Shown here piece after piece: positions 7,764-37,500 of a stretch of 64,000 bases of DNA. A model generated the notes under the pieces. That model saw only the letters and a list, made by a program, of their open reading frames with translations, was not told the DNA's origin and did not search any database. Positions within the stretch are counted from its first letter, which is position 1; each line of letters starts with the position of its first letter. Origin of the DNA: Oopsacas minuta (taxonomy: Eukaryota > Animalia > Porifera); assembly GCA_024704765.1 (NCBI GenBank), contig JAKMXF010000003.1, forward strand, positions 62,001-126,000, given 5' to 3'. A program made the translations under genes and the position numbers.

Positions 7764-8927
7764 ATGGCCACCAAATACTCAGATGAAATTCCTACCAACC
7801 CTTTCGAACTAACGGAACAGATGATCCATTCCACCTTCGAGAAGGTTATTCGGATTGCGACAGAAAGAAAAGATCAGCTGCTTGTCCAGCTGTTCGATAT
7901 GAAGCAGGACTATCTAAGAAAGGAGAACACAAGAAAGAAACGAGTAGCAGACCTGGAGAAGATGATCAGACAATTCAATGAGACTTCTATTCAAGAGAAT
8001 GAAATAGTGAAGTTTCAAGGAGAACAGATGTTGCAAACAAAAGCTGAAATACAGAAATACGAAAAAGAAACGCCTGTCCCATTTCCTTCCTTCAATACTG
8101 AGGGTCTGGACGGTCTCCTAGAACAGCTGGAGAAGTTGGGGTCTATTCAGGCTACAGCTGTACCCTACAGAAACAAGACAGAGCCAATCAGAAGGATAGG
8201 AAAATATGGAAGAGAGAAAGGAGAGCTGAATTGCCCTATTGGACTAGCTCTAGATGGAGATAAGATCTATATAGCAGATACATTGAATAGTAGAATACAG
8301 ATCTTCTCTACAGAAGGTAAGTTCATTCAAGAATTTGGTAAAGGGGAGCTAGATAATCCATACGGTATAGCATTATATAAGGAATGGGTGTTTATAAGTG
8401 ATTGGGAACTTCATGCTATATTTAAATTCTCTAAAACAAATTACAAATTAATTAAAATTAAGACAGTTGTTAGTTACCCTCATGGTCTAACAACTGACAC
8501 AAATGGAGAAGTGTTAGTTGCAGATTCTAGTAATAATAGAATTGCAGTACTCAGCTCTGATTTAGAATATATTAGAGAAATAGGAAAAGACAAACTTATA
8601 AAACCGTGTGACGTCAAAATAAATAATAATAATATATTTGTAGCAGACAATAATGAGATTAATAATATACACATATTCTCTAAATCAGGTGATTTATTGA
8701 AAAGTTTCATAAAATTAGAAAATGGAAGAGGATATATTTCTCTGTGTTTTGATTTGTATAATAATATTATTATTAGCGATTATATGGGAAAATCAATTAA
8801 TATATTTACTAAAGATGGACAGCTGATACACAAAATTAAATGTAATTATCCTACAGGAATTATTGTTAATAATAACTTTGATATTATTTGTGCTAGTTTT
8901 AGTGATAATGTAATAAATATTTATTAA
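7764..8927 (+). CDS. Coiled-coil + NHL beta-propeller protein, array copy A (387 aa)
   Basis: TRIM-like coiled coil ([27 protein letters not shown]) followed by six NHL repeats (L.xP.G.a.d...i.vaD..N.RI..F). No RING, B-box or signal peptide. Intronless. Confidence 0.92.
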   Translation: MATKYSDEIPTNPFELTEQMIHSTFEKVIRIATERKDQLLVQLFDMKQDYLRKENTRKKRVADLEKMIRQFNETSIQENEIVKFQGEQMLQTKAEIQKYEKETPVPFPSFNTEGLDGLLEQLEKLGSIQATAVPYRNKTEPIRRIGKYGREKGELNCPIGLALDGDKIYIADTLNSRIQIFSTEGKFIQEFGKGELDNPYGIALYKEWVFISDWELHAIFKFSKTNYKLIKIKTVVSYPHGLTTDTNGEVLVADSSNNRIAVLSSDLEYIREIGKDKLIKPCDVKINNNNIFVADNNEINNIHIFSKSGDLLKSFIKLENGRGYISLCFDLYNNIIISDYMGKSINIFTKDGQLIHKIKCNYPTGIIVNNNFDIICASFSDNVINIY

Positions 8928-9042
8928 CTATATTGTTGTTGTTATTTACTTGTTTGTTTATTATTTATTAAATTATTATATTCACACTTGTCCTTTTCTA
9001 TAAATTAACATTCCTAACCGTTTCCACACGTGTACCCCTATA

Positions 9043-9340
9043 CTAATTATAACACATTATGTGTATCCTCCCATATTTGAGGTCCAGTGGACAACTTGTT
9101 GTCCTCCATGGTTCAGGTTGTAAACGGATGCCATATGGTATCAGAATTAAGATGGCTGTACTTAAGGAAGTAAGTTTGAATTCTAACCTCGTATGCGTCT
9201 TCAGAGGTGTCATAAAGTACTTCACTATCTGGAATTGGTTCCGGTTCCATTATCTGAACTGGAACTATAGGAGGAGGTGTTCGTATAGGTTCCTCAGGTT
9301 CTTGTGGTTGCATATCTGCCATTTTGGGAGGTGTTGCCAT
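9043..9340 (-). pseudogene. Pro/Glu-rich small ORF or orphan first exon (MADMQPQEPEEP...), frameshifted relative to its copy at 29697-29981
   Basis: Near-identical to 29697-29981. A 7-nt difference near 9120-9135 splits the reading frame here. A possible splice donor follows ...DAYE (GAG|GTTAG). Confidence 0.4.
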
Positions 9341-9626
9341 TTGAATTAATTTAGATGGAAGTGGTCTAGAAATACATATTGTTTGTTTGGTTGTGTGTTT
9401 GTTTGTTTGTTTGTTTGTTTGTTTGTTTGTTTGTTTGTTTGTTTGTTTGGTTGTTGTAGCAAAATATGAACACTCAAATTAGGTGTGAATTAGCTCATTC
9501 GAATATTATTCAATTCACCTCTCGGTCTAACTAATCACATCAAAAGTATTTTCTATTTTGTCGATTTTTTCTGATATTTTGAATTTGGTTAATTCTAATA
9601 ATTTTGTTAGCTTTATTTGAATCAAA

Positions 9627-9754
9627 NGAGTAATCTTGTCTGTCCATATGAATTCTTCCTAGCTTAGATCCGTGTATATTGTAACTCACATTCTTTAAAT
9701 GCCTTATCTGCCCAACTGTTGCTACCTTGATAGATTTCCTGAACAGTTTATCAT
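9627..9754 (-). pseudogene. Isolated exon fragment resembling the RPF2 (Brix domain) C-terminal region
   Basis: Reads (D)DKLFRKSIKVATVGQIRHLKNVSYNIHGSKLGRIHMDRQDYS after an AG acceptor; recalled RPF2 motif KNIS.D.FG..YGRIHM.KQD. Truncated at the junction with the array repeat block, where the sequence has a single N (9627). Confidence 0.55.
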
Positions 9755-10320
9755 CTGGTGGGTGCAGAATACAATCACAAACGCAGAAATGAGAATGAAT
9801 CTTTGGGATGTAACAGTGATGTTATATACATTGTATAAGAGGTGTGTCATTGTAATGATTGGTTTGTGTGGATATTTGATTTATAGTGATATTTATATGT
9901 GTATTATTTGATTTGTGCTTAGACTATATTTCATATGAATTAAGGTTAGCATCCAAAATTTATCATATATGGACAATCTAGAATTATAATTCCCTTGTAA
10001 AAGTACAATCGAAAGTATTTATACTACAAATAATTTGTATTTATGTTTAGTGGAATGTATATGTATCTACTTGCGGAATTGGCTTTCGATCCGAATTATT
10101 TAGAATAATTCAGTTGATGTCAGCACATGATTGTTCCACCCCGGACCCGTTATAGTAGACCATAACAAATCACTTTACCATTCTAAGCGTTCGCATGCGT
10201 TTACATAATCAGAGGTATTATAAAATTAATGTAATAACCCACTGTACAAATGGTCTCTCTAATTACTAGTGCCACTTTGAACAATGTAATTACTATTTTC
10301 GTTTCACAAACTGTACTCAT

Positions 10321-10504
10321 CAGGGTTTCATCCAGCTTTTCTGAACCATACGCCTAAAATGTTCGCATTCATATTTACGTGCGTCTCGAGTATACATTTA
10401 GTATTACGGTATGGGGTCTTCCGCGAATTTTGACACGCCTAGATCTATTTTTGCTGATATTTATGCGCCTGTAGGCGCGTGGCATACGCCTGGATGATAC
10501 CCTG
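10321..10504. mobile_element. hAT-type MITE (184 bp) with 8-bp target-site duplication
   Basis: TIRs CAGGGTTTCATCCAG / CTGGATGATACCCTG (one mismatch). GTACTCAT is present on both sides (10313-10320 and 10505-10512). Confidence 0.9.
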
Positions 10505-11115
10505 GTACTCATCATATTCTAATGTGGCCTATCATACAAAATTAAAAAAATTCTTTAATATAGAACCAAGAGTTATGATAATACTGATTATCTTACAACA
10601 ATAGCGAAATCAACAAATGTATAATTTCAAGCTTCCCTTTTACATCACTCTTCGTAACATCCATTGGCCAAAGTAGAAATATGCTGTATTATACATAATT
10701 ATATATAAGAAACTGTTGAATAGAACTTGAGTTTTATAAATATTGCAAAATGAATAGTTTCTAACCTTTAGTATAGTTATTCCATTAAATCCGAGGCAAT
10801 TATACACAATTAATAGTAAATACCTCACAATACTTCCTGGCTAATTCAGTAATATGCGGACATAGCACATCATCCAAGCCATTAGGGCATCTCCCTATTG
10901 GAGCCTCACTTGTAGTAAAATTTGGTACGCTAATGCAAATCAATAAGGGTGGATTGCGTTAAAATATGTATTATACTATAATACCATTAACAAGAATAAA
11001 ATATAATTTATGGAGCTGTTTCGTCTTGGAAAATCTCAAAATAAAAGCAATGAATAAATGTTAGCAAACATAACAGTCCTTCCTGTTTCTATACCATTAT
11101 CGATAATGATGAATA

Positions 11116-11952
11116 TCATACATTGGCTTGTATTGGTGCTGGTACACAGGTTATCGTAGCATTTGGGTTCCAGGTAGTACTCTTGCAAATCAGACTGCCT
11201 CTTGTAGTCGGAGTTAAGCAAATAAAAGAAAATTTACTCTTGCAATAATCGCATGTCATCTCATTGCAACCACCATTATGTTCAAGTATAGTTGTGCAGT
11301 CAGGACAGGCTCTTATTCTAGGAACTTTGGCTGTTTTGCCTTTTTTATCTTTGAAATTAATCATTGGTGCAGACTTTAACTGTATGATCTTTTCTTTCTT
11401 GCAGTTTGAATTCCCACAGTTTTTGCCTTCAGTTGGGGAACTTTTCCATTCTCCAAGACAATACCAACAGAAGAGATAGGGTTTACTCATATTCTTTGTA
11501 CAGACAAGACAATTAACCTGAGGGCTGTCTTCGTTTTTACGCTGACAATAGCTTTTACAACGAATACACTGTTGTATATCTTGGCTGGCGCAGAAGTTAA
11601 CTGACAACGCTGCATTTAGAAATTGCTTCTCTTCATCATTAGGCAGTCCGAGTATTATGATGTCATCAATATCAACCATTTTTGTGCAGCTAGCACAACT
11701 AATTTCGTGTTTGAGTGTTTTTATTTGCTGCCAAGTATTGTCGAGTATATCAACTGGACACACGTAATGTCCACACTTCAGCTTGAGCCCTCCTTCATCT
11801 GAACATATACAGCATTCTCCATTAGGATGAGGGAATTTTACAGTTCTTTCATAATTCCTCTTCCCGATAAAGTAGTCTGCACCTACTCTAACCTGACTGA
11901 CTTCAATACCACGATTGTCAAATGCGGATTTAGAAGCAGCTAAACTTGACAT
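11116..11952 (-). CDS. Compact RBR (RING1-IBR-RING2) E3 ubiquitin ligase, single exon
   Basis: RING1-like CCIC...KCGHYVC...CASC; IBR QCIRC...VNCLVC...FCWYC; RING2 RACPDC..ILEHNGGCNEMTC with the catalytic Cys position retained. Confidence 0.85.
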   Translation of the reverse strand: MSSLAASKSAFDNRGIEVSQVRVGADYFIGKRNYERTVKFPHPNGECCICSDEGGLKLKCGHYVCPVDILDNTWQQIKTLKHEISCASCTKMVDIDDIIILGLPNDEEKQFLNAALSVNFCASQDIQQCIRCKSYCQRKNEDSPQVNCLVCTKNMSKPYLFCWYCLGEWKSSPTEGKNCGNSNCKKEKIIQLKSAPMINFKDKKGKTAKVPRIRACPDCTTILEHNGGCNEMTCDYCKSKFSFICLTPTTRGSLICKSTTWNPNATITCVPAPIQANV

Positions 11953-12765
11953 TACTGTTGCTAACTTGCTATACTATACAGGTAGTAGAAATCTACTCTA
12001 AAATATTCTCTTTATGTATACGACTATAGACTAGATGAATGTATGCATGTAGGGTTCCGTGGGAATGATAATTTGATTCCCATCTAATGCACACAGCATT
12101 TTCATAGAGATAGGATCCTCACCCCTGCATTTCCTATAAGAAATCTGATAGGAAAATACTAAGTATTTCCCTACCCATTCCATACTTGCCAAACTGAGTG
12201 AAAGAAAAGGTGGGGACGGAAAGTATGAATTTAGCGGATATCGCGGGACGCAGCATATTTGCATTAGGCGGGACTACAAAACATTGGGGCAATTATGGTT
12301 TTCGGCAAGTTTGGGTAGGACATTAGCTTTAACACATGTCTTAAAGGCTGGAGAGTTGGCAAGATACGATTCACACGGTAACCCTGAATATACGAAGTCA
12401 TTGACAACTTCAAGGATCAGTGAGTTTATCCTTACGAGTAACTTAAGTACAAAGCTTATTTTGCAGAATGCTACTTGGCTTCGCAGCTTGTGGTACAGAT
12501 GACAATAGAGTATTCGGTCAAAGCGTATATAGAAAGTAGAAAGTGTTTATGCATCTTTTGAAATATGGCTCAAAGATATTTTAGTAACACTGAAGCTTAC
12601 TCATAATCTGCCCAGACAAGAGTATTCAGGCATATCAAGAATTTCCATACAAATATTTATAATAATATGTATTGCAGATGTTACCTATGACTTATACAAT
12701 GTCAGTCAAACAAGGGAACAATGATATTATATCTTACATAGGATATACATATACACTAAATCTCA

Positions 12766-12846
12766 TATTATTATTATTATTATTATTATTTTTTATTATT
12801 ATTGTTATTATTGTTATTATTGTTATTATTATTATTATTATTATTA
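12766..12846. repeat. (ATT/GTT)n imperfect trinucleotide microsatellite
   Basis: Directly visible; it generates the poly-Ile/Leu ORF 12672-12893. Confidence 0.9.
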
Positions 12847-13650
12847 TATGTAATTACTCATTCTTCCCTTGTAAAAGTGTAAACATATATTAAACTGTCT
12901 CAATAAACTTCAAAATTATTCTAAACTAATGGTAAGTGTGATAAATCTAGTTTTTATTATCGAATATTCACAAAAATCAATCTCTATCATAATCCCTTCT
13001 TTAATTAACTAACCAATCCCTGGTCCAAATATTTTTAAGCGTGTCATTGCCTTAGTGTATAGAATGTCAAGGATAAGACTAAACAGACAAAAAGGTTTGA
13101 AAATCTACAAACATATTTGTTTACAATTCTTTACTTGTTATTATTTATAATCACCTCTCTATAAAGTTACAGAATATTTCAGTTATAACAAACATTCGTA
13201 TTACGATATAGAGGAAGAGTTATTAGAGAAGAGATTACCTCAACCTAATCCATACTGATTATACAGCATTCCAATGTCAATATGTGTTGTCATGATACTT
13301 GTCATGATTGTTTACTTGTTTACATATACTGTAGACTTTGTTTAGCCCAAAATTAATTTACCAACAAACTTATAAAATTCTTCCGAATTAGCTAATTATA
13401 GATTACACAAATAGCAACTAATTCTATACAAGGAATGTGGCTAGTTATAACTGGAACTAATTTACATATTGAACGCTATCTGACCTAACACATCCGTAAT
13501 TCTGTGAGACAATAGTCTCGTGGTAGAGTTAAAGGAAATGTGATTAGTTGTAACTTTCTATTTCATCACTTAACACCTGAATAATGAATGTATGAATTTG
13601 TATAAATACAATCTGTAAATGAGAATAATCATAAACACAACAACAAACAA

Positions 13651-14818
13651 ATGGCCACCAAATACTCAGATGAAATTCCTATTAACCATTTCGAACTAAC
13701 GGAACAGAAGATCCATTCCACCTTCGAGAAGGTTATTAGGATTGTGACAGAGAGGCGGGATCAGCTGCTTGTCCAGCTGTTCGATATGAAGCAGGACTAT
13801 CTAAGAAAGGAGAATACAAGAAAGAAACAATTCGCAGACCTGGAGAAGATGATCAGACAATTAATGGAAACTAGCATTCAACAGAATGAAGTAGTAAAGT
13901 TCCAAGAAGATCAAATAAAGAATTGGGGAAAAGAAACAAAAGAAATACGAAATAGAAACACCTATCCCAATCCCTTCCTTCAATAGTGAGGGTCTAGACT
14001 CTCTCCTAGAACAGCTGGAGAAGTTGGGGTCTATTCAGGATATAGCTGTACTATACAGAAACAAGATTGAGCCAATCAGAAGGATAGGAAAACCTGGAAG
14101 AGAGAAAGGAGAGCTGAATTACCCTGATGGACTAACTCTAGATGGAGATAAGATCTATATAGCAGATACAGGCAATAATAGAATACAGATCTTCTCTACA
14201 GAAGGTAAGTTCATTCAAGAATTTGGTAAAGGGGAGCTAAGTAATCCATCCAGTATAGCATTATATAAGGAATGGGTGTTTATAAGTGATAGGGGACTTA
14301 AAGCTATATTCAAATTCTCTAAAATAAATTACAAATTAATTAAGAGTGTTAAGGGAGTTGTTAGTTACCCTTGTGGTCTAACAACTGACACAAATGGAGA
14401 AGTGTTAGTTGCAGATTGTAATAATAATAGAATTGCAGTATTCAGCTCTGATTTAGAATATATTAGAGAAATAGGAAAAGACAAACTTATAAATCCGTGT
14501 GACGTCAAAATAAATAATAATAATATATTTGTAGCAGACAATAATGAGATTAATAATATACACATATTCTCTAAATCAGGTGATTTATTGAAAAGTTTCA
14601 TAAAATTAGAAAATGGAAGAGTATATATTTTTCTGTGTTTAGATTTGTGTAATAATATTATTATTAGCGATTATTGGGGAAATTCAATTAATATATTTAC
14701 TGAAGATGGACAGCTGATACACAAAATTACATGTAATGATCCTATAGGAATTATTGTTAATAATAACTTTGATATTATTTGTGCTAGTTTTAGTGATAAT
14801 GTAATAAATATATATTAA
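13651..14818 (+). pseudogene. Coiled-coil + NHL array copy B, one frameshift
   Basis: ORFs 13651-13986 and 14024-14818 are the two halves of one paralog. A 1-nt shift at or near the G run 13925-13928 restores ...KYEIETPIPIPSFNSEGLD. Confidence 0.85.
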
Positions 14819-14829
14819 TTATATTATTA

Positions 14830-16632: not shown

Positions 16633-17942
16633 CAGGGTGTCTAATAAGTTCTGTTATATATCAATTCCCCAATAATTTCAAATTTATCCATTGTAAAGCC
16701 ATGAAACTTTCTATTTTCTTAGGACTTATGTTCCTAATTACAAATTACAAATTTCATTCAATATAGCCTCCCTTTTTATGAATTACGGAAGTTAGTCTGC
16801 TCCGAAACTGATGGACAGCTTTTCGCAGCTCCTCCTGTGGGATTTTCTGCCATTCACTCAACAAACTAACTTTGAGGGACTCCAAACTCTTGTGAGATTT
16901 CGCACAGGCCCTGCTCTCCAAGTTTGCCCAAACAGAATAGTCGAGTGGGTTTAAATCTGGGCTTGATGGTGGCCATTCATCCTTACTTATGAAATCGATA
17001 TTTTGCTCACGGAACCAACTCTGGGATACTTTTGAAGCATGTGCAGGCGCAGAGTCTTGTTGGTAAGTCCAAGGATGGTTTTGAAAGAGCTTCTCACCCG
17101 CAGACGCAATTTCAGGCTCCAAAACCAGTTCTCTGTACGTCTGGGAGTCTATTTTCACTCCTTGGGGGACAAAAATCAGGTTTGTCCGTGAGTCTGCCGA
17201 CACTCCCGCCCATACCATCAGAGAAAGAGGCTTCTGGACTCTATCAATGTACTTGATGCTATCTGGGATATCCTGACTTCGAGAAGCAAGTATACGGTCG
17301 TTTTGACGATTGCTTGCCTCCTCAACGGTGAACAGCTTCTCATCTGAGAAGAGAATCTGATCTTCAGTCCCAGGAGCGAATCGGGCTTTTAGTTGTATGC
17401 ATCTTTCGAGTCGCTTACGACGTATGGAGTCGTTAAGATGGTGTACGTTTTCCGCTTATAGGACTTCATTCCTAGGTCCTCTACAACCAATTTCCGCATC
17501 GTTTCGTGATTGACACAGAATTCACGAGACATTTTTCGCATTGAACGCCGGGGATTTCTTAGGATTCGACATCTAACACTATTCTTCAGGGCTGGTGTGC
17601 GGGCGGATCTTGGACGACCAATTCGTTTCCTGTCGGACACGCTGCCAGTCTCTATTTATCGTTTTATTGTGCGATAGATCAACATGGGATTCACTTTATC
17701 ATTTTCTAGCCTTTTTAGAATTTCACTATTGCTAAACCCAGATTCGTGAAAAGTGACAATTTTTGAACGAATTTCTTCTAACATGATTTCTGGGAAATCA
17801 TCAACTTGAATGATATATTCTTGGTATAATTTGAAAGAGCGCCAAAAATGCTACAAGAAATTCTAGAAGATTACTTCATAAGTATATTAATAGCTACTGT
17901 CTAAGGCGCGAAAATGTATAACACAACTTATTAGACACCCTG
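16633..17942 (-). mobile_element. maT-family (DD37D) Tc1/mariner transposon, full length (1310 bp), transposase inactivated
   Basis: 18-bp TIRs CAGGGTGTCTAATAAGTT with TA duplication; the empty site is seen in paralogous units. Transposase 17784-16754 has FSDEK, QQDSAPAH and SPDLNPLDY with 37 residues between the 2nd and 3rd Asp. One premature TAA (about 17660) and one frameshift (about 17450). Confidence 0.93.
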
Positions 17943-18375
17943 TAATTCTGTTTTTTATACTCAAAATTGGAAAAATGAAATTCAGAGTAACTTCTTCCCA
18001 AAAAATTGTGTCTCAGAACGAATTATCACACCTTGAATACAAAATATCAAATATGGCAAATGAATAATTTCCATAAGAATAGTTAAGATATTCTAATTAT
18101 AGATTACACAAATTGGAACTAATAGCTAATACAGCATAGCAACTAATTCTATACAAGGAATGTGGCTAGTTATAACTGGAACTAATTTACATATTGAAAG
18201 CTATCTGACCTAACACATCCGTAATTCTGTGAGACAATAGTCTCGTGGTAGAGTTTAAGGAAATGTGATTAGTTGTAACTTTCTATTTCACCACTTAACA
18301 CCTGAATAATGAATGTATGAATTTGTATAAATACAGTCTGTAAATGAGAATAATCATAAACAGAACAACAAACAA

Positions 18376-19542
18376 ATGGCCACCCAATACTCAGAAGAAA
18401 TTCCTACCAACCATTTCGAACTAACGGAACAGCTGATCCATTCCACCTTCGAGAAGATTATTCGGATTGCGACAGAGAGGCGAGATCAGCTGCTTGTCCA
18501 GCTGTTCGATATGAAGCAGGACTATCTAAGAAAGGAGAATACAAGAAAGAAACAAGTAGCAGAACTGGAGAAGCTAATCCAACAAGTCATGGAAACTAGC
18601 ATTCAGCAAAATCCAATCCTCAAAGTCCAAGAGAGGCAACTAAACAACTTGGAAGAAGAAAAGATGAAATACAGTGAGCAAACCCCTATCCCCATCCCTT
18701 CCTTCAATAGTGAGGGTGTAGACTCTCTCCTAGAACAGCTGGAGAAGTTGGGGTCTATTCAGGCTATAGCTGGACAACAAGTCTACAGAAACAAGACTGA
18801 GCCAATCAGAAGGATAGGAAAACCTGGAAGAGAGAAAGGAGAGCTGTATGGCCCTCAAGGACTAGCTCTAGATGGAGATAAGATCTATATAGCAGATACA
18901 GACAATAGAATACAGATCTTCTCTACAGAAGGTAAGTTCATTCATGAATTTGGTAAAGGGGAGCTAAGTAATCCATACGGTATAGCATTATATAAGGAAT
19001 GGGTGTTTATAAGTGATTGGAGATTTAATTTTATATTTAAATTCTCTAAAACAAATTACAAATTAATTAAAAGTGTTAAGAGAGTTGTTATTTCCCCTCT
19101 TGGTCTAACAACTGACACAAATGGAGAAGTGTTAGTTGCAGATTATAATAATAATAGAATTGCAGTATTCAGCTCTGATTTAGAATATATTAGAGAAATA
19201 GGAAAAGACAAACTTATATATCCGCGTGACGTCAAAATAAATAATAATAATATATTTGTAGCAGACAATAATGAGATTAATAATATACACATATTCTCTA
19301 AATCAGGTGATTTATTGAAAAGTTTCATAAAATTAGAAAATAGAGCATTTATTTTTCTGTGTTTTGATTTGTGTAATAATATTATTATTAGCGATAATTG
19401 GGGAAATTCAATTAATATATTTACTGAAGATGGACAGCTGATACACAAAATTAAATGTAATTATCCTTCAGGAATTATTGTTAATAATAACTTTGATATT
19501 ATTTGTGCTAGTCTGAGTGATAAAGTAATAAATATATATTAA
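18376..19542 (+). CDS. Coiled-coil + NHL array copy C (388 aa)
   Basis: Intact ORF co-linear with copy A; variant coiled-coil segment; in-frame 1-codon deletions in two loops. Confidence 0.92.
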   Translation: MATQYSEEIPTNHFELTEQLIHSTFEKIIRIATERRDQLLVQLFDMKQDYLRKENTRKKQVAELEKLIQQVMETSIQQNPILKVQERQLNNLEEEKMKYSEQTPIPIPSFNSEGVDSLLEQLEKLGSIQAIAGQQVYRNKTEPIRRIGKPGREKGELYGPQGLALDGDKIYIADTDNRIQIFSTEGKFIHEFGKGELSNPYGIALYKEWVFISDWRFNFIFKFSKTNYKLIKSVKRVVISPLGLTTDTNGEVLVADYNNNRIAVFSSDLEYIREIGKDKLIYPRDVKINNNNIFVADNNEINNIHIFSKSGDLLKSFIKLENRAFIFLCFDLCNNIIISDNWGNSINIFTEDGQLIHKIKCNYPSGIIVNNNFDIICASLSDKVINIY

Positions 19543-20382
19543 TTATATTATTGTTATTATTGTTATTATTATTGTTATTTGTTTGTAATTAAATTCCCAT
19601 ATTTTACTATTTTTATTAATAATTTCCTTTCCAGTGTAAATATAATTTTTCAAAAATAGAATTAAATCATTGAATTATAAAAATTACGCACAAAGTTCTA
19701 ACTAATCAACTTCTAACTCGATTCCAACTCCGGGCTCGGATATCTCCAGTGGACTCCCTGCTGTCCTCCGATGGGCCACTAGGTGTGAGGGATTATTCCA
19801 TTTTTCTTTAATAGTAGTATATTATTAATAATCCGAGATAAAAATAGAATCCAGTTCAAGTTATAAGCGAATAACAAAGAGCACACACATTAGAAGATAT
19901 ACTGTTAGAAATTCAGTAAATAAAAGTAGCTTACATAATATGAATTGCTTAATTCTGAAATTCGTAAAAGTTAATGGGTCGCTCTATTAAAATGCTTTGT
20001 GTTCATTTGCGGGAGGTTGGATATAGGTATAAATTATAGATAATATCATGACAAATCACTCTAAAACTTGATATTACCTGGCCACGACTGGCAACAGTGA
20101 GTTTGGGGGGTAATTAGATCAAGGTATAATGTGTCCGGACACATTATGTGACGTCAAAATTAACTGAACCATGGAGAAAATATTCAAAGTGAAATATTTA
20201 GCTCTCATCAGAATTGAGAAGAATATGTTCTGAACTAATAATAGGTGAAAACTTAGAGCTGTCATTCCAATGAGTATTTTTGAATCGAGAATTATATGCC
20301 TATGTGTAAACAGAAAATAGAGTATGAATTTGTATAAATACAGTCTGTAAATAAGAATAATCATAAACAGAACAACAAACAA

Positions 20383-24262: not shown

Positions 24263-27208
24263 CAGGCACGTAGCTAGAGCAAGACATTCAGGGGGGCAAG
24301 AAGTATTTCGGGAGGGCAATTGCAGGGATAAATATTTTTGAAAAGTTAATTACTTGTGTATAGCAAGTACGACCCAGTCTCCTTTTCTTACATGTATAGC
24401 CTTTTGAATTCATAAAGTACCAGATTACTAAGCTAGGGCGCATTAGATTAGTCTACATTATAGTAAGAGCATTTATTAAGATACTAAACTCAATTCAGGG
24501 ATACTATTTGACATTACAAAAGAAAGCGGCTGTGCTTCATCTGCTTAAAATGTCATCTTTCCGAGAAATAAACGAACGGAAAACTTCTACTTCACAATCT
24601 TTGATATCTATTGCATACAGTTCAGATAGTGTATTCAATTCCTGTTTGTTAAGAAAGTTTTGAGACCTTGGTAAGCAGCAATCAGCAGCCTTCATGATGC
24701 CTGATTGATCTGTACCAAAACGGGCATCCAATTCTGCTAAGATCTCGCGGACATTTTGGCGTAACAATATTTCAAGCTCTTCAAAGTTGGATGCGTTTGT
24801 GTGTCCAACAGAGCTATTTAGATATCCTTCTCTAAACCTTTCTGGAAGACGCCGTTGCCTGATTGTGTCTCTTACATCAAAATTTTCGATTTCATATTTA
24901 CTGGACAAATCTTTGGCATATTCAACAACCTTGTCAAAATAGAAATTGACCGACCTTTCCCTCAGATCGGCAAGTAATATCAAACAAGAAGAAACAGTTG
25001 CTGTCGACTTCTGAAAAGCTTTAGTGCAAAAATCAGAGTAATCATACAGCCTACCAAAGTACACTAAGATGGTCATAAATTTCTTTGTTTGTAGACTACC
25101 TAGTAAAGATTTAGCTGCTAAACTTGTGTCTGCATCATTATCATTTCCAAATATGCTTAAAGTATCAAGTATGCAATCAAACCGACGCAGAAACCTTTCC
25201 ACCTCCAAAGAACGGGAAGACCAACGAGTACTACATGAACGTGCAAGTTCAAGAGCTTGGACGTTGGGATAGCGCTCATCCTGGACGTCTATGAAAACTG
25301 CATGTCGCTTTGTTCCATTCATGAACGAATACGTCAAATGCAATATATCAAAGAAAGATTTCATCAGAGGATGTCGTTCAGCAGTTGCAGCTAATACTAA
25401 GTTAAGCCTATGTGAAGCACAATGAACATATGTGGCATTGCGATAACCTGCTCCTTTCATGCGGGCTTGGACACCACCGTGTATTCCTGACATAACACTA
25501 GCCCCGTCGTAACCCTGTCCTACACATTTCAGAGGATCGAGCTCAAAAGGCTTAAGTAGCTCTATCAGTTTTTCAGAGATGGTGCCCGCATCCATGTCCT
25601 TCAATTCAATAAAGCCAATAGCTCTATCTCGGACATTACCTTTATGGATATATCGCAAAGAACCACCTAACTCCTTCTTAGATGCATCTTTTACTTCGTC
25701 AGCTAGAATAGCATAACAAGACGCGATTTCTACTTCACTTTTAACATAGTCTAGAAGCACTGAAGCGAGTGATGTAAGCAAATCATTTTGGATATCTGGA
25801 CTTAGCATTTTTGCATTTCTTGGAAGACTTTCTATCCTCTTGGTCACATTGCTATCATATTTTCCTAAAAGTTCTAATATTTCAAGAAAGTTCCCTTTAT
25901 TAAGCGACTGATCTGATTCATCATCTCCTCGAAGAGGAACATCTTGTTTGGCACAAAAAGTAATAATGTCAAGAACAGTCATTAAATGTTTCCGATTGTC
26001 ATCTATGAATTTCTCATTTCGAAAATTGGGATCCAGTTGCTTATCTACCGTCCCTATTATTTGATGAATTGCCCAGATTTTCTGTGTTTCAACAGCTGCC
26101 ATATGACACACAGAACTATCGTGCTCCCTGCACTTGTCGCCAAGTTTCCTCCAGTCACAAAGTCCTTTTGTTGAAAACGTTGCTTCAGCTGTTGATCCTC
26201 CAAAAAGCCGACACGGTTGGCAAAATATAGCATCGAGTTCTTTGCTATACTCTATCCAGGAGAATTGGGCATACCAATGAGTACTAAAATGTCTACCGGC
26301 CTCATTTTTTAGGTAGATAATAGAAGGCTGCCTCGGTTTCTCACCATTTTTGGACAAATCATTTACAGTCACAATTGGTGATTGTATATGAGTCGTGTTT
26401 AAACGGAGTTGAAATAGTTGTACAAGAACCGGAAGTTAAAGGGGTCGAAACTTGAAGACTCGTAACAACAGGCTCTACCTCCTCATAATTTGAAGAGACG
26501 ACATGATCTTCGATTTCTATTCGATTTCTTTTAAAATATGCCTGAACTTTGCTTTGTTGTAGTCTTTTAGTCATCTAGAATTGTTAGAGATACGAGTCAC
26601 TGAACTGATTGAAGAACAGAAAATGTGAAAGATATGAGATATAGACTATAGAGTGACTTTATAACTTATAGAGAATATCCGAAATTCGCTTCACTCATGT
26701 GTAAATTTCAAAACAAGCTTTGAAAACTGAAACCCTAAGAGCATCACCAATCCTTCAATTACTTCAATGGACAGTCTAACTTCTGACAACAATTACTAGC
26801 GGTCTGTGGTAATTCAATTAAAATTATAGTAGAAATTCAGTGCCTGTCAAAATAGAACAAGTTTACTATCAATGAGCGTTACTTCCTGTCTAATATTAAA
26901 ACCATCATCGCAACGCGAGTTATTAATATCATAGTTTTGACGATGCAGTTGAAGTACATAGACTATTAATTACAGTGGAGTCCGCTTACTAGCAGCTCGG
27001 ATTTTGCAGAAATTTGGTTGCTAATAGGGCAACGAAATTAACATTATAATCCCGTTTGGGACCCGAAAGCTGATTGTTAATAGAGCAATATTACTAATAA
27101 GCTAACTACAGTGTATATAAAAACGAAAACTTCAAATTTATCTGGGGGGGGCGAGAGAAACTTTTGGGGAGGCAACCGCCCCCCTTGCCCCCCGTAGCTA
27201 CGTGCCTG
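24263..27208 (-). mobile_element. hAT DNA transposon (ZMYM1-like transposase), defective
   Basis: Perfect 14-bp TIRs CAGGCACGTAGCTA and subterminal GGGGGGCAAG. Transposase on minus (26574-26359 frameshifted into 26372-24537) has a TTF-type Zn finger (IFCQPC..F), ILADE, GQGYDGASVM, CASHRLNL and TRWSSR. It stops before the final catalytic Glu and dimerisation domain. No matching 8-bp TSD. Confidence 0.9.
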
Positions 27209-27636: not shown

Positions 27637-27732
27637 GTAATACACGTCGGATGCGTGAATAATTGGAGGATAGTGAAATATTAACCCGCGTCCGAATGGT
27701 GTCAACGTGTGTGCATGTATCGCTTATAAGAA

Positions 27733-28368: not shown

Positions 28369-28411
28369 ACAGTCTGTAAATGAGAATAATCATAAACAGA
28401 ACAACAAACAA

Positions 28412-29578
28412 ATGGCCACCAAATACTCAGATGAAATTCCTACTGACTCTTTCGAACTAACGGAACAGATGATTCATTCCACCTTCGAGAAGATAATTCG
28501 GATCGCGATAGAAAGGAAAGATCAGCTGCTTGTCCAGCTGTTCGATATGAAGCAGGACTATCTAAGAAAGGAGAATACAAGAAAGAAACGAGTAGCAGAC
28601 CTGGAGAAGATGATCCAACAATTCAATGAGACTTCTATTCAAGAGAATGAAATAGTGAAGTTTCAAGGAGAACAGATGTTGCAAACAAGAGCTGAAATAC
28701 AGAAATACGAAAAAGAAACGCCTGTCCCATTTCCTTCCTTCAATACTGAGGGTCTGGACGGTCTCCTAGAACAGCTGGAGAAGTTGGGGTCTATTCAGGA
28801 TATAGCTGTACCCTACAGAAACAAGACAGAGCCAATCAGAAGGATAGGAAAATATGGAAGTAAGAAAGGAGAGCTGTTTCGCCCTTATGGACTAGCTCTA
28901 GATGGAGATAAGATCTATATAGCAGATACATTCAATGATAGAATACAGATCTTCTCTACAGAAGGTAAGTTCATTCAAGAATTTGGTAAAGTGGAGCTAT
29001 ATAATCCATCCGGTATAGCATTATATAAGGAATGGGTGTTTATAAGTAATTTGGAATTTAATTTTATATTAAAATTCTCTAAAACAAATTACAAATTAAT
29101 TAAGAGTGTTAAGGGAGTTGTTAGTTTCCCTCTTGGTCTAACAACTGACACAAATGGAGAAGTGTTAGTTGCAGATTGTGATAATAATAGAATTGCAGTA
29201 TTCAGCTCTGATTTAGAATATATTAGAGAAATAGGAAAAGACAAACTTATAAAACCGCGTGACGTCAAAATAAATAATAATAATATATTTGTAGCAGACA
29301 ATAATAAGATTAATAATATACACATATTCTCTAAATCAGGTGATTTATTGAAAAGTTTCATAAAATTAGAAAATGTAAAAGAATTCATTTTTCTGTGTTT
29401 AGATTTGTATAATAATATTATTATTAGCGATTATTTCGGAAAATCAATTAATATATTTACTGAAGATGGACAGCTGATACACAAAATTAAATGTATTTAT
29501 CCTACAGGAATTATTGTTAATAATAACTTTGATATTATTTGTGCTAGTTTTAGAGATAAAGTAATAAATATATATTAA
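28412..29578 (+). CDS. Coiled-coil + NHL array copy E (388 aa)
   Basis: Intact ORF co-linear with the other copies. Confidence 0.92.
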   Translation: MATKYSDEIPTDSFELTEQMIHSTFEKIIRIAIERKDQLLVQLFDMKQDYLRKENTRKKRVADLEKMIQQFNETSIQENEIVKFQGEQMLQTRAEIQKYEKETPVPFPSFNTEGLDGLLEQLEKLGSIQDIAVPYRNKTEPIRRIGKYGSKKGELFRPYGLALDGDKIYIADTFNDRIQIFSTEGKFIQEFGKVELYNPSGIALYKEWVFISNLEFNFILKFSKTNYKLIKSVKGVVSFPLGLTTDTNGEVLVADCDNNRIAVFSSDLEYIREIGKDKLIKPRDVKINNNNIFVADNNKINNIHIFSKSGDLLKSFIKLENVKEFIFLCLDLYNNIIISDYFGKSINIFTEDGQLIHKIKCIYPTGIIVNNNFDIICASFRDKVINIY

Positions 29579-29696
29579 TAATATTATTGTTGTTGTTATT
29601 TACTTGTTTGTTTATTATTTATTAAATTATTATATTCACACTTGTCCTTTTCTATAAATTACCATTCCTAACCGTTTCCACACGTGTACCCCTATA

Positions 29697-31770: not shown

Positions 31771-32243
31771 GCTAGAAATTTACTAAATAAAAGTAGTAAA
31801 ATGTGAATTGCTTATATTCTGAAATTCGTAAAAGTTAGTGGTTCGCTCTCTTAAAGATGCTGAGTGTTCATTTGCGGGAGGCTGGATGTAGGTCTAAATT
31901 ATAGATAATATCATGACAAATCATCCTAAAACTTGATATTACCTGGCCACGACTGGCCACAGTGAGTTTGAGGGGTAATTAGATCAGGGTATAATGTGTC
32001 CGGACACATTATGTGACGTCAAAATTAACTGAACCATGGAGAAAATATTCAAAGTGAAATATTTAGCTCTCATCAGAATTGAGAAGAGAATGTTCTGAAC
32101 TAATAATAGGTGAAAACTTAGAGCTTTCTAATGAGTATTTTTGGATCAAGAATTATATGCCTATGTGTAAACATAACATAGAGTATGAACTTGTATAAAT
32201 ACAGTCAGTATATTAGAATAATCATAAACAGAACAACAAACAA

Positions 32244-33407
32244 ATGGCTACCAAATACTCAGATGAAATTCCTACCAACCACTTCGAACTAACGGAACAG
32301 ATGATCCATTCCACCTTCGAGAAGATTATTAGGATTGCGAAAGAGAGGAGAGATCAGCTGCTTGTACAGCTGTTCGATATCAAGCAGTATTATCTAAGAA
32401 AGGAGAATACAAGAAAGAAACGAGTAGCAGACCTGGAGAAGATAATCAGACAATTAAATGAGACTTCTATTCAAGAGAATGAAATAGTAAAGTTTCAAGA
32501 AGAACAGATGTTGCAAACAAAAGCTGAAATACAGAAATACGATAAAGAAACGCCTGTCCCATTTCCTTCCTTCTGCCTTGAGGGTCTAGACTCTCTCCTA
32601 GAACAGCTGGAGAAGTTGGGGTCTATTCAGGAGATAGCTGGACTATACAAAAACAAGACAGAGCCAATCAGAAGGATAGGAAAACCTGGCAGTGAGATAG
32701 GGGAGCTGAATTACCCTTATGGACTAGCTCTAGATGGAGATAAGATCTATATAGCAGATGCATACAATAAAAGAATACAGATCTTCTCTACAGAAGGTAA
32801 GTTCATTCATGAATTTGGTAAAGAGGAGCTAGATATTCCATCCGGTATAGCATTATATAAGGAATGGGTGTTTGTAAGTGATTGGGGATTTAATTTTATA
32901 TTAAAATTCTCTAAAACAAATTACAAATTAATTAAGAGTGTTAAGGGAGTTGTTAGTTACCCTTATGGTCTAACAACTGACACAAATGGAGAAGTGTTAG
33001 TTGCAGATTTGGGTAATAATAGAATTGCAGTATTCAGCTCTGATTTAGAATATATTAGAGAAATAGGAAAAGACAAACTTATAAGACCGAATGACGTCAA
33101 AATAAATAATAATAATATATTTGTAGCAGACAAGAATAAGATTAATAATATACACATATTCTCTAAATCAGGTGATTTATTGAAAAGTTACATAAAATTG
33201 GAAAATGGAGAATATATTTTTCTGTGTTTTGATTTGTATAATAATATTATAATTACCGATTATTGGGGAAATTCAATTAATATATTTACTAAAGATGGAC
33301 AGCTGATACACAAAATTGAATGTAATAATCCTAGAGGAATTATTGTTAATAATAACTTTGATATTATTTGTGCTAGTTATAGTGATAGTGTAATAAATAT
33401 ATATTAA
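32244..33407 (+). CDS. Coiled-coil + NHL array copy F (387 aa)
   Basis: Intact ORF; shares its upstream region type with copy D. Confidence 0.92.
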   Translation: MATKYSDEIPTNHFELTEQMIHSTFEKIIRIAKERRDQLLVQLFDIKQYYLRKENTRKKRVADLEKIIRQLNETSIQENEIVKFQEEQMLQTKAEIQKYDKETPVPFPSFCLEGLDSLLEQLEKLGSIQEIAGLYKNKTEPIRRIGKPGSEIGELNYPYGLALDGDKIYIADAYNKRIQIFSTEGKFIHEFGKEELDIPSGIALYKEWVFVSDWGFNFILKFSKTNYKLIKSVKGVVSYPYGLTTDTNGEVLVADLGNNRIAVFSSDLEYIREIGKDKLIRPNDVKINNNNIFVADKNKINNIHIFSKSGDLLKSYIKLENGEYIFLCFDLYNNIIITDYWGNSINIFTKDGQLIHKIECNNPRGIIVNNNFDIICASYSDSVINIY

Positions 33408-33785
33408 TTATATTATTATTGTTATTAATGTTGTTATTTGTTTGTAATTAAATTCTCATATTTTACTATTTTTATTAATAATTTCCTTTCCAATGTAAAT
33501 ATAATTTTTCAAAAAATAGAATTAAATCATTAAATAATAAAAATTACGCACAAAGTTCTAACTAATCAACTTCTAACTCGATTCCAACTCCGGGCTCGGA
33601 TATCTCCGGTGGACTCCCTGCTGTCCTCCGATGGGCCACTAGGTGTGAGGGATTATTGCATTTTTCTTTAATAGTAGTATATTATTAATAATCTGAGATA
33701 AAAATAGAATCCAGTTCAAGTTATAGGCGAATAACAAAGAGCACACACATTAGAAGATATATTGTTAAAATAATATACACAGGTG

Positions 33786-34513
33786 TTAAAAAGATTCTCT
33801 TAAGAATTGGGTGAGTAGGAGCTGTTTAGCACTAGGACGATTGGATGGATCTCTAAATGAAATATTAATAGTTATACAGATGTACAAACAAATTCAGAGT
33901 GTAATCTAAGATATTGCTTATATCTTAGAAAGGTGTTCCCAGACTAATCACATTCCACATACACACAAAATTCAAATTTCTAGCCCTTATCATTCCCCAA
34001 ATAATATTCTCTTAAAATTCATTCATGAACAATATTTTTGTCCCCCGCGGGGGTTCACAATAGGTGACCATTACTGTAGCCTAATTATCAAACTAACTGT
34101 TGCAGACATCTGTTAATAAATGCCTTCACTCCATCTGATAATGTATCAGGAAGTTGTGGTAGATCATATCCCATTCCTATCCTGAATAGAGCTGCTTCTT
34201 GTGAGATATCTTTAAAGGCCCTACAAACACTCTTGAAGCTAAAATATGTGATGGAGGGAAGGGAGGTATTCTCATGTGCATAATTACAGAATCCATTCTA
34301 TTACAATCATTTAAGAGTAAATACCAAGGTGGCTTCCCTGTTGCCATCTCAAAAACTGTACATCCAATGCTCCTATAGAAATATACAAGATAATGGCAAC
34401 AAAATATAAATGCAAATACAGTCAATGCCCCCGGGAAGTCAAAATCGGTTCGAGATAGCGAATATTCGAGTTAACAGGTTTTTGAGATAGTGGATGTTGA
34501 GTGTATATAAAGT

Positions 34514-34554
<41 letters not shown>

Positions 34555-37500
34555 GACACACCATATATCAGCCTTTTCATTATACTCTTCTTCTCGTATA
34601 ACCTCAGGAGCCATCCAATATACAGTTCCTTTCATAGATTTGCATAACATTGTGAACTTATCGTAGGTAAGCTAGAAGTATAATTATTGAATAATAAGCG
34701 AATAATTATGGCTGCTATATGTGTCTTACCGTAGCCGATTCATCTCTGAAAGCTCTTGCACACCCAAAGTCTATCAGTTTTATGCATCCACTCGGCTCTA
34801 CCATTATGTTATCTCCCTTCACGTCTCTAACATATACGAATAGTTAATTAGTGTCCATCGTATAGGGGAGGGGGAGCATTTCTAGCGTCCGTTGGTGTTC
34901 GTATTAAAGATATTCTGGTATACATATGTACTTACCTGTGTATTACATTCTTTGAATGTAAATACTTAACTCCACTGACAATCTGACGAGTGTAATTCCT
35001 TAGAAAAGATTCTTCAAATGGTCCGTATCTAATTACAGAATTAATTCAATTATCTATAAACTATTCTATTTTTAGAACAGTAGACTCAGATTAATTAGGG
35101 TCATATCTGGATCAGACCATTTTGACCTGATTAACCGGTGTCTACTGTAGTAGATGAATAGATAATTGTATTTCTGATTTTCTTACGTTTTCAGCAGTCG
35201 AGCTACAGATCCTCCAGCTACGAACTCCATGAATATATTCACTATCATGTTGTCAAGACACGAGCCGAGATATTTGACTATATTTCCATGAGAAAGTCTC
35301 TTAAGAACATCCACTTCTGCTTTGACGAGTTCGTATTGCTAAAAATAGAAATATTGCATACAACAATTCCCTAAAGATTATTGCATCTATTATGATTAAT
35401 CATATTTTGACACCTTTGATAATGTCCTATGAAATTGTATGAACTCAATATTTCCTATTTTTCACGCATAAATATCAAGGAAGAATCTACAAGAAATGAT
35501 TAGAATCATAAATTGGAACTGATAGCTAATACGGCATAGCAACTAATTCTATACAAGGAATGTGGCTAGTTATAACTGGAACTAATTTACATATTGAAAG
35601 TCATCTGACCTAACACATCCGTAATTCTGTGAGACAATAGTCTCGTGGTAGAGTTCAAGGAAATGTGATTAGTTGTAACTTTCTATTTCATCACTTAACA
35701 CCTGAATAATGAATGTATGAATTTGTATAAATACAGTCTGTAAATGAGAATAATCATAAACAGAACAACAAACAAATGGCCACCCAATACTCAGATGAAA
35801 TTCCTACCAACCCTTTCGAACTAACGGAACAGATGATCCATTCCACCTTCGAGAAGATTATTCGGATTGCGACAGAAAGGAGAGATCAGCTGCTTGTCCA
35901 TCTGTTCGATATGAAGCAGGACTATCTAAGAAAGGAGAACACAAGAAAGAAACAATTAGCAGACCTGGAGAAGATGATCCAACAATTCAATGAGACTTCT
36001 ATTCAAGAGAATGAAATAGTGAAGTTTCAAGAAGAACAGATGTTGCAAACAAGAGCTAAAATACAGAAATACGAAAAAGAAACGCCTGTCCCATTTCCTT
36101 CCTTCAATAGTGAGGGTGTAGACTCTCTCCTAGAACAGCTGGAGAAGTTGGGGTCTATTCAGGAGATAGCTGGACTATACAGAAACAAGACAGAGCCAAT
36201 GAGAAGGATAGGAAAACCTGGAAGAGAGAAAGGGGAGCTGAATTACCCTTATGGACTAGCTCTAGATGGAGATAAGATCTATATAGCAGATACAGGCAAT
36301 AATAGAATACAGATCTTCTCTACAGAAGGTAAGTTCATTCAAGAATTTGGTAAAGAGCAGCTAAATACCCCACACGGTATAGCATTATATAAGGAATGGA
36401 TGTTTATAAGTGATGGGGAACTTAATGCTGTATTAAAATTCTCTAAAACAAATTACAAATTAATTAAGAGTGTTAAGGAAGGTGTTAGTTTCCCTCATGG
36501 TCTAACAACTGACACGAATGGAGAAGTGTTAGTTGCAGATTCTAATAATAATAGAATTGCAGTATTCAGCTCTGATTTAGAATATATTAGAGAAATAGGA
36601 AAAGACAAACTTAGATTTCCGCGTGACGTCAAAATAAATAATAATAATATATTTGTATTAGACAATAATGAGATTAATAATATACACATATTCTCTAAAT
36701 CAGGTGATTTATTGAAAAGTTTCTTAGAATTAGAGGATGGAAGAGGTTTAATTTATATGTGTTTAGATTTGTGTAATAATATTATAATTAGCGATTGTTC
36801 GGGAAATTCAATTAATATATTTACTAAAGATGGACAGCTGATACACAAAATTATATGTAATATACCCACAGGAATTATTATTAATAATAACTTTGATATT
36901 ATTTGTGCTAATTGTAGTGATAATGTAATAAATATATATTAATTATATTGTTGTTATTTACATATTTGTTTGTAATTAAATTCTCATATTTCTCTTTTTA
37001 TATTAATAATTTTGGTACAACGAATCTAGACTTAAATAATATTTCCCAAAATTACAAATTGACTGACAGATGAAATAACTATTGTGTATTTTGGTAGTTA
37101 GCTAACTGATCATGACATAACATTTCAAGGACCAAATCAACGGTCCTAATCTGGGGGCTATCGACCCCTTGGTGGTCCACGGGTAACAAACAATAATATA
37201 TCTAATATCAATACTCAATTTCCATGTATGGTTATACTCGTATATCTCTGTTTTATACAACCAACCTTCATTGCTTTCTCTTTATCATAATAGTTAAGTT
37301 CAATCTGCTTCACTGCTATTATCATTCCTTTATCAAGAGTTAATCCTCTCACAACCTAATCAACATATTATCATAAAGGTTCTGTAAATATTTTACCCCT
37401 TATGCTGTGATCTCGACTAAGCAGAGATATTAATAATATCGCTAGACTTATTGCCGGTTATAAGAACACCCTTGGGAGTAGCAATGGATGGTCTATGAGT

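Follow-up and report, generated by a model that had tools for sequence, protein, structure and literature searches.

The window analysed here, a 64,000-nucleotide stretch of the genome of the glass sponge Oopsacas minuta (Hexactinellida; contig JAKMXF010000003.1, positions 62,001 to 126,000), carries a set of seven gene copies, of which six are intact with a single exon and one is frameshifted; each is laid out as a helical N-terminus followed by a six-blade NHL propeller. Open reading frames (ORFs) and alignments put all seven copies (A–G) on the forward strand, where an earlier note on this DNA had placed them. Copy A (7764–8927; 387 amino acids), defined by its ORF, Pfam NHL matches and alignments, is an intact single-exon coding sequence (CDS) with N-terminal helices and a six-blade propeller; copies C (18376–19542; 388 amino acids), D (20383–21555; 390), E (28412–29578; 388), F (32244–33407; 387) and G (35776–36942; 388) are likewise intact, with a two-codon insertion in the blade-2 b–c loop of copy D. 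Copy G, the propeller of which spans residues 143–388 (nucleotides 36202–36939), served as the reference for residue numbering and for the structure model. The earlier description of seven nearly identical copies holds for these six, but had overlooked that copy B (13651–14818, forward strand) is frameshifted by a 1-bp insertion near 13937, which brings in a stop at 13984–13986 and leaves the NHL part (14024–14818) as the remaining ORF. The public gene model of copy B (359 amino acids) spans the break with an 88-nt GT–AG intron (13899–13986); an extra base and an intron are two possible readings of this break in the assembly sequence. The array is otherwise intronless, as had been noted, each copy having its own TATA box and ATTAAA signal.

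The ORFs start at a conserved ATG, 50 nt after the conserved TATA box, with no ORF upstream. The TATA-type sequence TATAAATA lies at 7714 before copy A and at 35726 (−50) before copy G, and was found in seven of seven copies; in copy A, ATTAAA follows 40 nt past the stop. The 5′ flank of copy G (35507–35775, forward strand; about 270 bp) is conserved with those of A, B, C and E at 95.5–98.5% identity, while copy D upstream of about −60 is unlike most copies and shares its sequence with F. Shared between copies are only the 5′ flank (about 270 bp), the CDS and some 70 bp of 3′ flank. The tandem array described earlier is no simple tandem repeat, and unrelated genes and remnants of transposons occupy the spacers. 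On the reverse strand, these include an IBR/RBR-type zinc-finger ORF between A and B (11116–11952; 278 amino acids; Pfam IBR), relatives of which showed no clear linkage to NHL arrays; a putative Tc1/mariner-type transposase fragment between B and C (16754–17218; 154-amino-acid ORF), named by eye from its translation; and a DUF4371 transposase-like ORF between D and E (24537–26372; 611 amino acids; Pfam DUF4371), which we take to be of hAT type. Beyond the range covered by the earlier note lies a divergent eighth paralog of the same architecture, copy H (51671–52864, forward strand; 397 amino acids; 47% identical); it has a one-to-one relative in a second species, and so represents an older lineage outside the hypervariable clade.

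Pfam NHL (PF01436) matched copies A, D and H at 61–78 bits against a cut-off of 20. An AlphaFold2 model of copy G (me91a91eedce9; mean pLDDT 84, propeller above 90) is a propeller of 24 strands, making up six four-stranded blades that an N-terminal strand closes, preceded by helices at residues 12–75, 82–100, 113–123 and 128–136. Foldseek matched this model to TRIM-NHL propellers with a target TM-score of about 0.8, the closest solved structures being those of Thin, LIN-41/TRIM71, TRIM2/3 and Brat, and LIN-41 structures solved in complex with RNA were among the matches; a family profile search recovered Thin, TRIM71, TRIM2/3 and Brat at E values of 1e-33 to 1e-47. The sponge proteins thus share the six-blade NHL type of the class VII TRIM-NHL proteins (TRIM2, TRIM3, TRIM32/Thin, TRIM71/LIN-41, Brat, Mei-P26 and NHL-2) and, in the model, a long N-terminal helix before the propeller, as in the TRIM coiled coil. 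This helical region is probably a coiled coil, through which the proteins may dimerise; helices 12–75 and 82–100 have pLDDT 54–83, and the one hint in the sequence is a non-significant match to the TRIM45 coiled coil (E = 0.11). They differ from TRIM-NHL proteins in having no RING, B-box or filamin domain in Pfam scans or precomputed domains; RING and B-box, the absence of which had been reported for this locus, were likewise missing across about 160 listed family members, and a search with the N-terminal 130 residues as sole query matched only NHL-only proteins, none with either domain. Nothing found here supported the further suggestions of a decoy role or of pairing, by way of the coiled coil, with TRIM-type E3s. 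Pfam returned just NHL and propeller-type matches, with no NACHT NTPase or WD40 repeats. No signal peptide was seen at the N-terminus, as judged by eye, from which a cytosolic location is plausible.

Mean pairwise dS and dN were 0.042 and 0.091 in the NHL domain (dN/dS 2.15), against 0.214 and 0.111 in the helical domain (dN/dS 0.52); the NHL-domain dS resembles the divergence of the shared 5′ flank (1.5–4.6%). Using our own implementation of GY94 site models, rather than PAML or HyPhy, we obtained ω = 1.86 for the NHL domain under M0, and M2a placed 16.9% of its codons at ω = 14.7. Diversifying selection, which the earlier note had suggested checking by comparing M7 with M8, was borne out in that comparison (2ΔlnL = 156.4) and in those of M1a with M2a and M8a with M8 (155.7 each; p ~1e-34), while 2ΔlnL for the helical domain was only 6.7. 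Recombination can inflate such tests; 2ΔlnL for the NHL domain was 160–186 when the tree was a star or followed the helical-domain topology, and when the set was restricted to the six intact genes. Posterior probability exceeded 0.95 at 27 sites, at which pairwise differences at codon positions one to three were 0.41, 0.53 and 0.25, compared with about 0.03–0.04 elsewhere. Third positions, previously described as mostly fixed, are so only in part. A synonymous variant was present in just 2 of 38 codons adjoining selected ones, and this unraised variation, together with the low 5′ flank divergence, makes the excess specific to amino-acid changes. Loop indels are in frame, as had been observed. 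These codon patterns indicate that about 25 residues are under strong positive diversifying selection.

Most of the 27 sites lie on one side of the propeller. Twenty are in the d–a and b–c loops, five on strands a and c, of which they are the first residues and so adjoin the top loops, and two in the linker; 20 of 73 top-loop residues were selected versus none of 45 bottom-loop residues (Fisher p = 2.5e-5). Each loop string quoted in the earlier note agrees with the alignment, and the site models and loop mapping confirm its observation that, in all blades, variability gathers around the conserved Pro of the d–a loop and after the conserved Asp of the b–c loop. Mapped on the predicted structure, as had been proposed, these positions occupy the top side, which the published definition for Brat-NHL assigns to the d–a and b–c loops and which there serves as an RNA-binding platform (PMC4015489). 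The framework and bottom face are nearly invariant, synonymous sites included. The selected sites are rich in Tyr (15%) and aromatic residues (32–34%), a make-up that renders a top face resembling antibody CDRs plausible; with K + R at 8%, the variable face is not basic, unlike the RNA-binding faces of TRIM-NHL proteins. By analogy with Brat, the top face may be the binding face in the O. minuta proteins as well.

The seven genes belong to a much larger family: O. minuta has at least 33 close paralogs spread over many contigs, and the second species has more than 75, hypervariable at the same columns. Column entropy peaks coincided between 19 O. minuta and 75 second-species paralogs (Spearman 0.56, p = 1e-22), and in a tree the copies of each species formed their own clade (SH-aLRT 100), so that the expansions are species-specific. 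The second species also carries whole 4.4-kb tandem units that are 99.7% identical, non-coding spacers included. Between these units the helical domain had no synonymous changes, while the NHL domain had up to 21 non-synonymous and 2–4 synonymous changes. The extent of this family, and a signal of recombination in the helical domain, had both been overlooked earlier.

We consider it likely that these genes form a large, lineage-specific glass-sponge family whose cytosolic products make up a recognition repertoire shaped by diversifying selection, with a birth-and-death mode of duplication and some transfer of sequence from one paralog to another. The family would grow as a compact unit (promoter, single exon and poly(A) signal) is duplicated locally again and again. 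Selection diversifies the top-face d–a and b–c loops, and the framework and bottom face stay nearly constant. The outcome would be a germline-encoded set of binding specificities for fast-changing or diverse cytoplasmic ligands, most plausibly non-self molecules of viruses, microbes, mobile elements or foreign tissue, and an immune role may follow.

A similar pattern could arise if the copies were old, with conversion homogenising framework, flanks and synonymous sites while balancing selection protected loop differences that are substituted slowly. We regard this as unlikely, although several observations fit it: PHI gave significant recombination both for the complete CDS and for its helical part (p = 0.0005); the middle of the helical domain of copy C is of a divergent type common to B, with helical-domain dS of 0.33–0.42 to non-B copies and 0.23 to B, against 0.013–0.08 in the NHL domain; loop motifs are mosaic among otherwise distant copies, with 54% of NHL informative site pairs incompatible; and paralogs group by species. 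However, PHI was non-significant inside the NHL domain alone (p = 0.16), synonymous diversity beside the selected codons is not raised as it should be around long-maintained variants, and the near-identity of the second-species units, spacers too, fits recent duplication. Moreover, with only about 20 conserved codons separating one variable patch from the next, conversion could act only through very short tracts with exact placement.

Still less probable, in our judgement, is a mutational process aimed at the loops, be it local hypermutation, error-prone repair or templated micro-conversion from donor cassettes, in which selection for amino-acid change plays little or no part. The second species lends it some weight, as its units differ at about 23–28 positions in 770 bp of NHL coding sequence versus 9 in 3,270 bp of spacer, several of the changes are adjacent double substitutions, some spanning codon boundaries, and the 2–4 synonymous changes exceed the roughly 0.4 expected from the flanks, so that a mutational or micro-conversion contribution is possible. 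In O. minuta, by contrast, synonymous sites no more than one or two codons away from a selected one hardly vary, four-fold degenerate Pro codons in the hot patches are almost unchanged and adjacent double changes stay within codons; the changes do not target any one base (the most frequent base was T at 22 variable columns, A at 21, G at 11 and C at 9), and the differences separate germline paralogs. Mutagenesis of the diversity-generating retroelement type was considered and rejected: the window showed no reverse transcriptase among its ORFs, no donor NHL fragments beyond the listed copies and no adenine bias. An origin of the copies as wrongly assembled alleles, or as duplicates decaying under relaxed constraint, is highly improbable. 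Copy B is frameshifted, and the assembly, made from a wild animal, is a draft that combines PacBio and Illumina data (PMC10280926), but every copy has its own spacer with different genes and transposon remains, DNA-like runs reached 25–130 times the depth of single-copy sequence over the genes, six of the seven ORFs are unbroken, the pattern recurs in the independent assembly of the second species, and relaxed constraint predicts ω near 1 throughout rather than about 15 on one face above an invariant framework.

The favoured reading, a diversified recognition repertoire, can be set beside known systems. LRR, Ig, B30.2/SPRY and fungal WD40 scaffolds are familiar bases for diversifying multigene recognition families. 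Bilaterian TRIM-NHL genes are few and are developmental RNA regulators. Flies, C. elegans and mammals have only three to five TRIM-NHL genes per genome (PMC4015489); the sponge family differs in its dozens of copies and in a top-face ω of about 15. The HNWD/NWD genes of Podospora anserina (het-d, het-e and het-r), which encode NACHT-WD40 NLRs for non-self recognition, resemble it in using a β-propeller as recognition module, where positive selection falls on the interaction face at a handful of positions in each blade and the rest of the repeat is near-identical, and in being a multigene family with sequence exchange, pseudogene members and cytoplasmic products in a syncytial organism (PMC1805685). 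They differ in that the propeller is WD40 rather than NHL and is fused to NACHT and HET effector domains, and in that homogenisation there acts on repeats, both inside a gene and from gene to gene, whereas in the sponge whole genes are alike and the blades of one gene are dissimilar; allorecognition has been demonstrated for the fungal genes, and the likeness to the sponge family is one of functional analogy only.

TRIM restriction factors and fish finTRIMs are also TRIM-type coiled-coil proteins in tandem arrays, with diversifying B30.2/SPRY surface loops that serve intracellular pathogen recognition; they differ in using B30.2/SPRY rather than NHL, and in a RING and B-box that give E3 activity. 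To our knowledge, such fast-evolving families are confined to vertebrates. TRIMs divide into conserved and fast-evolving groups (PMC2533329). As judged from its sequences, the sponge family bears a mark of diversified non-self repertoires such as TRIM5/finTRIM, fungal HNWD genes and plant NLRs, being a multigene family with site-specific positive selection on a putative binding surface.

Full-text searches for NHL with expansion, diversifying selection or Porifera returned nothing comparable, and neither of the two glass-sponge genome papers mentions the family; we found no earlier report of the NHL propeller as a diversified recognition scaffold. Immune recognition in sponges is poorly understood. 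A bolder reading, which we put forward tentatively and hold to be possible rather than probable, is that glass sponges independently built an intracellular, germline-encoded system of non-self recognition on the NHL top face, in which dozens of RING-less coiled-coil/NHL sensors with fast turnover and selected diversity would serve antiviral or antimicrobial recognition or, in this syncytial animal, allorecognition in the cytoplasm, by analogy with the WD40 het genes of syncytial fungi. Such a system would add a new class to the immune-type receptors of animals, and would do so in a lineage that branched off among the earliest. As non-self sensors, the proteins would offer a concrete, testable receptor candidate for sponges and a naturally diversified library of NHL binding surfaces, and would mean that propeller top faces have been used convergently for recognition in animals and fungi.

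The family is also abundantly transcribed when taken as a whole. RNA-like run X1 had zero depth in the spacer at 6085–6283 and 45,000–112,000 over the RPL35 gene; over copy A, depth summed over many paralogs and Logan contigs, and so a family-level rather than a per-copy value, was 170,000–650,000, compared with about 1,000 for the neighbouring USP gene. In this one adult run, the summed depth of the family exceeded that of RPL35.

Seven near-identical paralogs (copies A–G), each encoding N-terminal helices and a six-bladed NHL propeller, lie on the forward strand of an intron-poor stretch of animal DNA (G+C about 35%), at 7764–8927 (A), 13651–14818 (B), 18376–19542 (C), 20383–21555 (D), 28412–29578 (E), 32244–33407 (F) and 35776–36942 (G); a divergent eighth paralog, H, 47% identical, is at 51671–52864. 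The earlier note had described seven intronless copies, and all seven are where it placed them, but only six carry intact ORFs (387–390 amino acids): copy B is frameshifted by an apparent 1-bp insertion near 13937, with a stop at 13984–13986, and is rescued in the public annotation by an 88-nt GT-AG intron (13899–13986). Single-exon genes are normal in Oopsacas minuta, as the genome has 1.59 introns per gene (PMC10280926).

The repeated unit comprises only ~270 bp of 5′ flank, the coding sequence and ~70 bp of 3′ flank, and each of the seven copies has TATAAATA at −50, with ATTAAA lying 25–46 nt downstream of the stop. The spacers are mutually unrelated and hold, between copies A and B, a reverse-strand ORF of the IBR/RBR zinc-finger type (11116–11952; 278 amino acids), as well as two further ORFs, one resembling a Tc1/mariner fragment and the other DUF4371 transposase-like; base 9627, in the spacer that follows copy A, is a single N in the assembly. 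Copies D and F have a common upstream sequence from about −62 outward (~20083–20320 and ~31944–32182), unlike the other five; it includes the perfect palindrome ATAATGTGTCCGGACACATTAT and could derive from the terminus of a mobile element inserted in place of the distal promoter. An Rfam scan of the whole window gave no matches.

A Pfam scan of the genes returned NHL repeats and nothing else. Copy G was modelled with AlphaFold2 on a family alignment of 95 sequences (mean pLDDT 84; propeller >90). The model has helices at residues 12–75 and 82–100, followed by 24 strands arranged as six blades of four, the sixth closed by an N-terminal strand (143–145). By profile and fold, the closest solved structures are the TRIM-NHL propellers of Thin, LIN-41/TRIM71, TRIM2/3, Mei-P26 and Brat. 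As the earlier note had it, these genes lack RING and B-box, and neither was found in the ~160 relatives listed; by definition, therefore, the proteins fall outside the TRIMs. The N-terminal region had no significant match in Pfam or in a PDB profile search, the best relevant hit being the TRIM45 coiled coil at a non-significant E = 0.11.

Every loop string quoted in the earlier note is correct in the alignment, and the diversifying selection that it proposed is strongly borne out. Across the 21 pairs of copies (Nei–Gojobori), the NHL domain has mean dS 0.042 and mean dN 0.091 (dN/dS 2.15, and >1 in every pair), while the helical domain has mean dS 0.214 and mean dN 0.111 (dN/dS 0.52). The non-coding 5′ flank common to the copies differs by 1.5–4.6%, so that neutral divergence among them amounts to a few percent. 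Site models (GY94 F3x4, implemented in our own code rather than PAML or HyPhy) gave ω = 1.86 for the NHL domain under M0 and, under M2a, ω = 14.7 for 16.9% of codons, with 2ΔlnL of 155.7 (M1a versus M2a), 156.4 (M7 versus M8) and 155.7 (M8a versus M8; p about 1e-34 to 1e-35 for these comparisons). The result was robust to a star tree (185.6), to the helical-domain topology (160.0) and to restriction to the six intact genes (160.0); for the helical domain, 2ΔlnL was merely 6.7.

Twenty-seven NHL-domain codons had posterior >0.95, and we assigned them to loops and strands using the strands of the copy G model. On this predicted structure, the top face of the propeller takes 11 selected sites in the 46 residues of the d–a loops, around the conserved Pro, and 9 in the 27 residues of the b–c loops, after the conserved Asp, against none in the 45 residues of the a–b and c–d loops on the bottom (top versus bottom loops, Fisher p = 2.5e-5); five more sites are the opening residues of a or c strands and two lie in the linker preceding the propeller. 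The top face is the RNA-binding platform of Brat (Loedige et al., PMC4015489), and in TRIM2, TRIM3 and TRIM71 this region is noted to line the binding cavities (Chaikuad et al. 2022, PMC9634614). Tyr makes up 15% of residues at the selected sites, aromatics 32–34% and Lys plus Arg 8%; this composition is closer to that of protein-binding paratopes than to the basic faces with which Brat and LIN-41 bind RNA.

Could the variation reflect targeted mutation? Conserved residues close to selected codons show no excess of synonymous variation (of 38 codons no more than two positions away, 2 carry a variant), adjacent double changes fall inside codons rather than across codon boundaries, and no base is preferentially targeted at variable columns, a pattern that argues for selection for amino-acid change in O. 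minuta. At selected codons, 41%, 53% and 25% of pairs differ at positions 1, 2 and 3, compared with 3–4% elsewhere; position 3 is indeed the least variable, but calling third positions mostly fixed was an overstatement. Donor cassettes or DGR-like mutagenesis can be set aside, as there is no base-specific pattern and no NHL fragment beyond A–H within the 64-kb window.

Sequence exchange between paralogs does occur. The PHI test was significant (p = 0.0005) for the whole coding sequence as well as the helical domain, and in copies B and C an ordinary NHL domain follows a helical segment of a divergent type (dS up to 0.42). Inside the NHL domain PHI was non-significant (p = 0.16); the mosaic in which copies share loop motifs hints that conversion may shuffle loops there.

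The O. minuta family numbers at least 33 proteins (69–85% identity), spread over many contigs either singly or in small clusters. In sequencing runs X3 and X4, which are DNA-like, depth over the NHL genes (window 7478–9050 and 18083–21624) is 25–130 times single-copy, which suggests that the animal holds more copies than the ~33 annotated and that some may be collapsed or unassembled. ENA assembly ERZ25766962, whose source we assume to be another hexactinellid, encodes >85 family proteins at 53–59% identity, likewise tandem, and the peaks of column entropy fall at matching positions in the two species (Spearman 0.56). Copies cluster by species in the tree (SH-aLRT 100 for each clade), and H pairs with a single relative from the other species. 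On contig ctg17026 of that assembly (1112–11176) the tandem unit is ~4.4 kb; three units have spacers 99.7% identical and no synonymous changes in the helical domain, and their NHL domains differ by ~3%, with up to 21 non-synonymous and 2–4 synonymous changes, a striking difference in rate to which mutation or micro-conversion may also contribute in this species. On its opposite strand the ctg17026 unit also carries ORFs of 289 and 63 amino acids, both lacking a Pfam match. The remaining full-length relatives found among 1.8 billion cluster representatives are all ENA proteins, and the family is undescribed in both glass-sponge genome papers and in the literature covered by full-text searches.

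Four runs containing the window's sequence (X1–X4) come from a single study; for O. minuta, a separate adult supplied each of the libraries, which are RNA-seq, DNA paired-end, mate-pair and PacBio (PMC10280926). Whereas X2–X4 are flat, at about 100–180 over single-copy DNA, X1 behaves as RNA-seq, since its depth is zero in the spacer at 6085–6283, about 1,000 on the USP gene and 45,000–112,000 over 3100–3696, the stretch of a forward-strand ORF (3212–3589; 125 amino acids) read as ribosomal protein L35 (uL29). X1 depth reaches 170,000–650,000 over copy A (matches at ≥99% identity) and a similar level over copies C and D (≥97%), these values being sums over paralogs, which Logan contigs do not separate; they establish abundant transcription for the family as a whole, not copy by copy. 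Joints seen only in X1, in copies A (8315–8751) and D (20934–21379), leave out 435 or 444 nt without breaking the frame, at a depth of ~30 versus >300,000 and with non-canonical GG..TT ends; they probably arose as artefacts of template switching between similar blades, not by splicing.

The best-supported reading, from sequence and model, is that the array would be a repertoire whose members present different binding specificities on the propeller top face; strong diversifying selection would maintain it, together with birth-and-death duplication and a degree of exchange between paralogs. Its role may be in immunity, defence against mobile elements or allorecognition. The closest working counterpart is the HNWD family of Podospora, a syncytial organism, in which near-identical frameworks likewise form a propeller (WD40 in HNWD) whose interaction face has four selected positions per repeat (PMC1805685). 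The silica-skeleton proteins of hexactinellids (hexaxilin, perisilin and glassin) have unrelated domains.

Pairing with TRIM-type E3s through the coiled coil, as first proposed, is unsupported: a search limited to residues 1–130, which might have found a RING-bearing relative, matched NHL-only proteins exclusively. Nor is the IBR/RBR ORF a convincing E3 partner, being unrelated to the ORF that accompanies the second-species NHL genes and having paralogs that are not clearly located near NHL arrays. The ORF is a member of a separate small multicopy family, with one other O. minuta paralog and many relatives in ERZ25766962, several together on one 1.74-Mb contig. TRAF-like genes (MATH domain, zf-TRAF) at 3183–3854 and 12271–13407 of another O. 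minuta contig, JAKMXF010000084.1, adjoin two other NHL family members, which may be coincidence.
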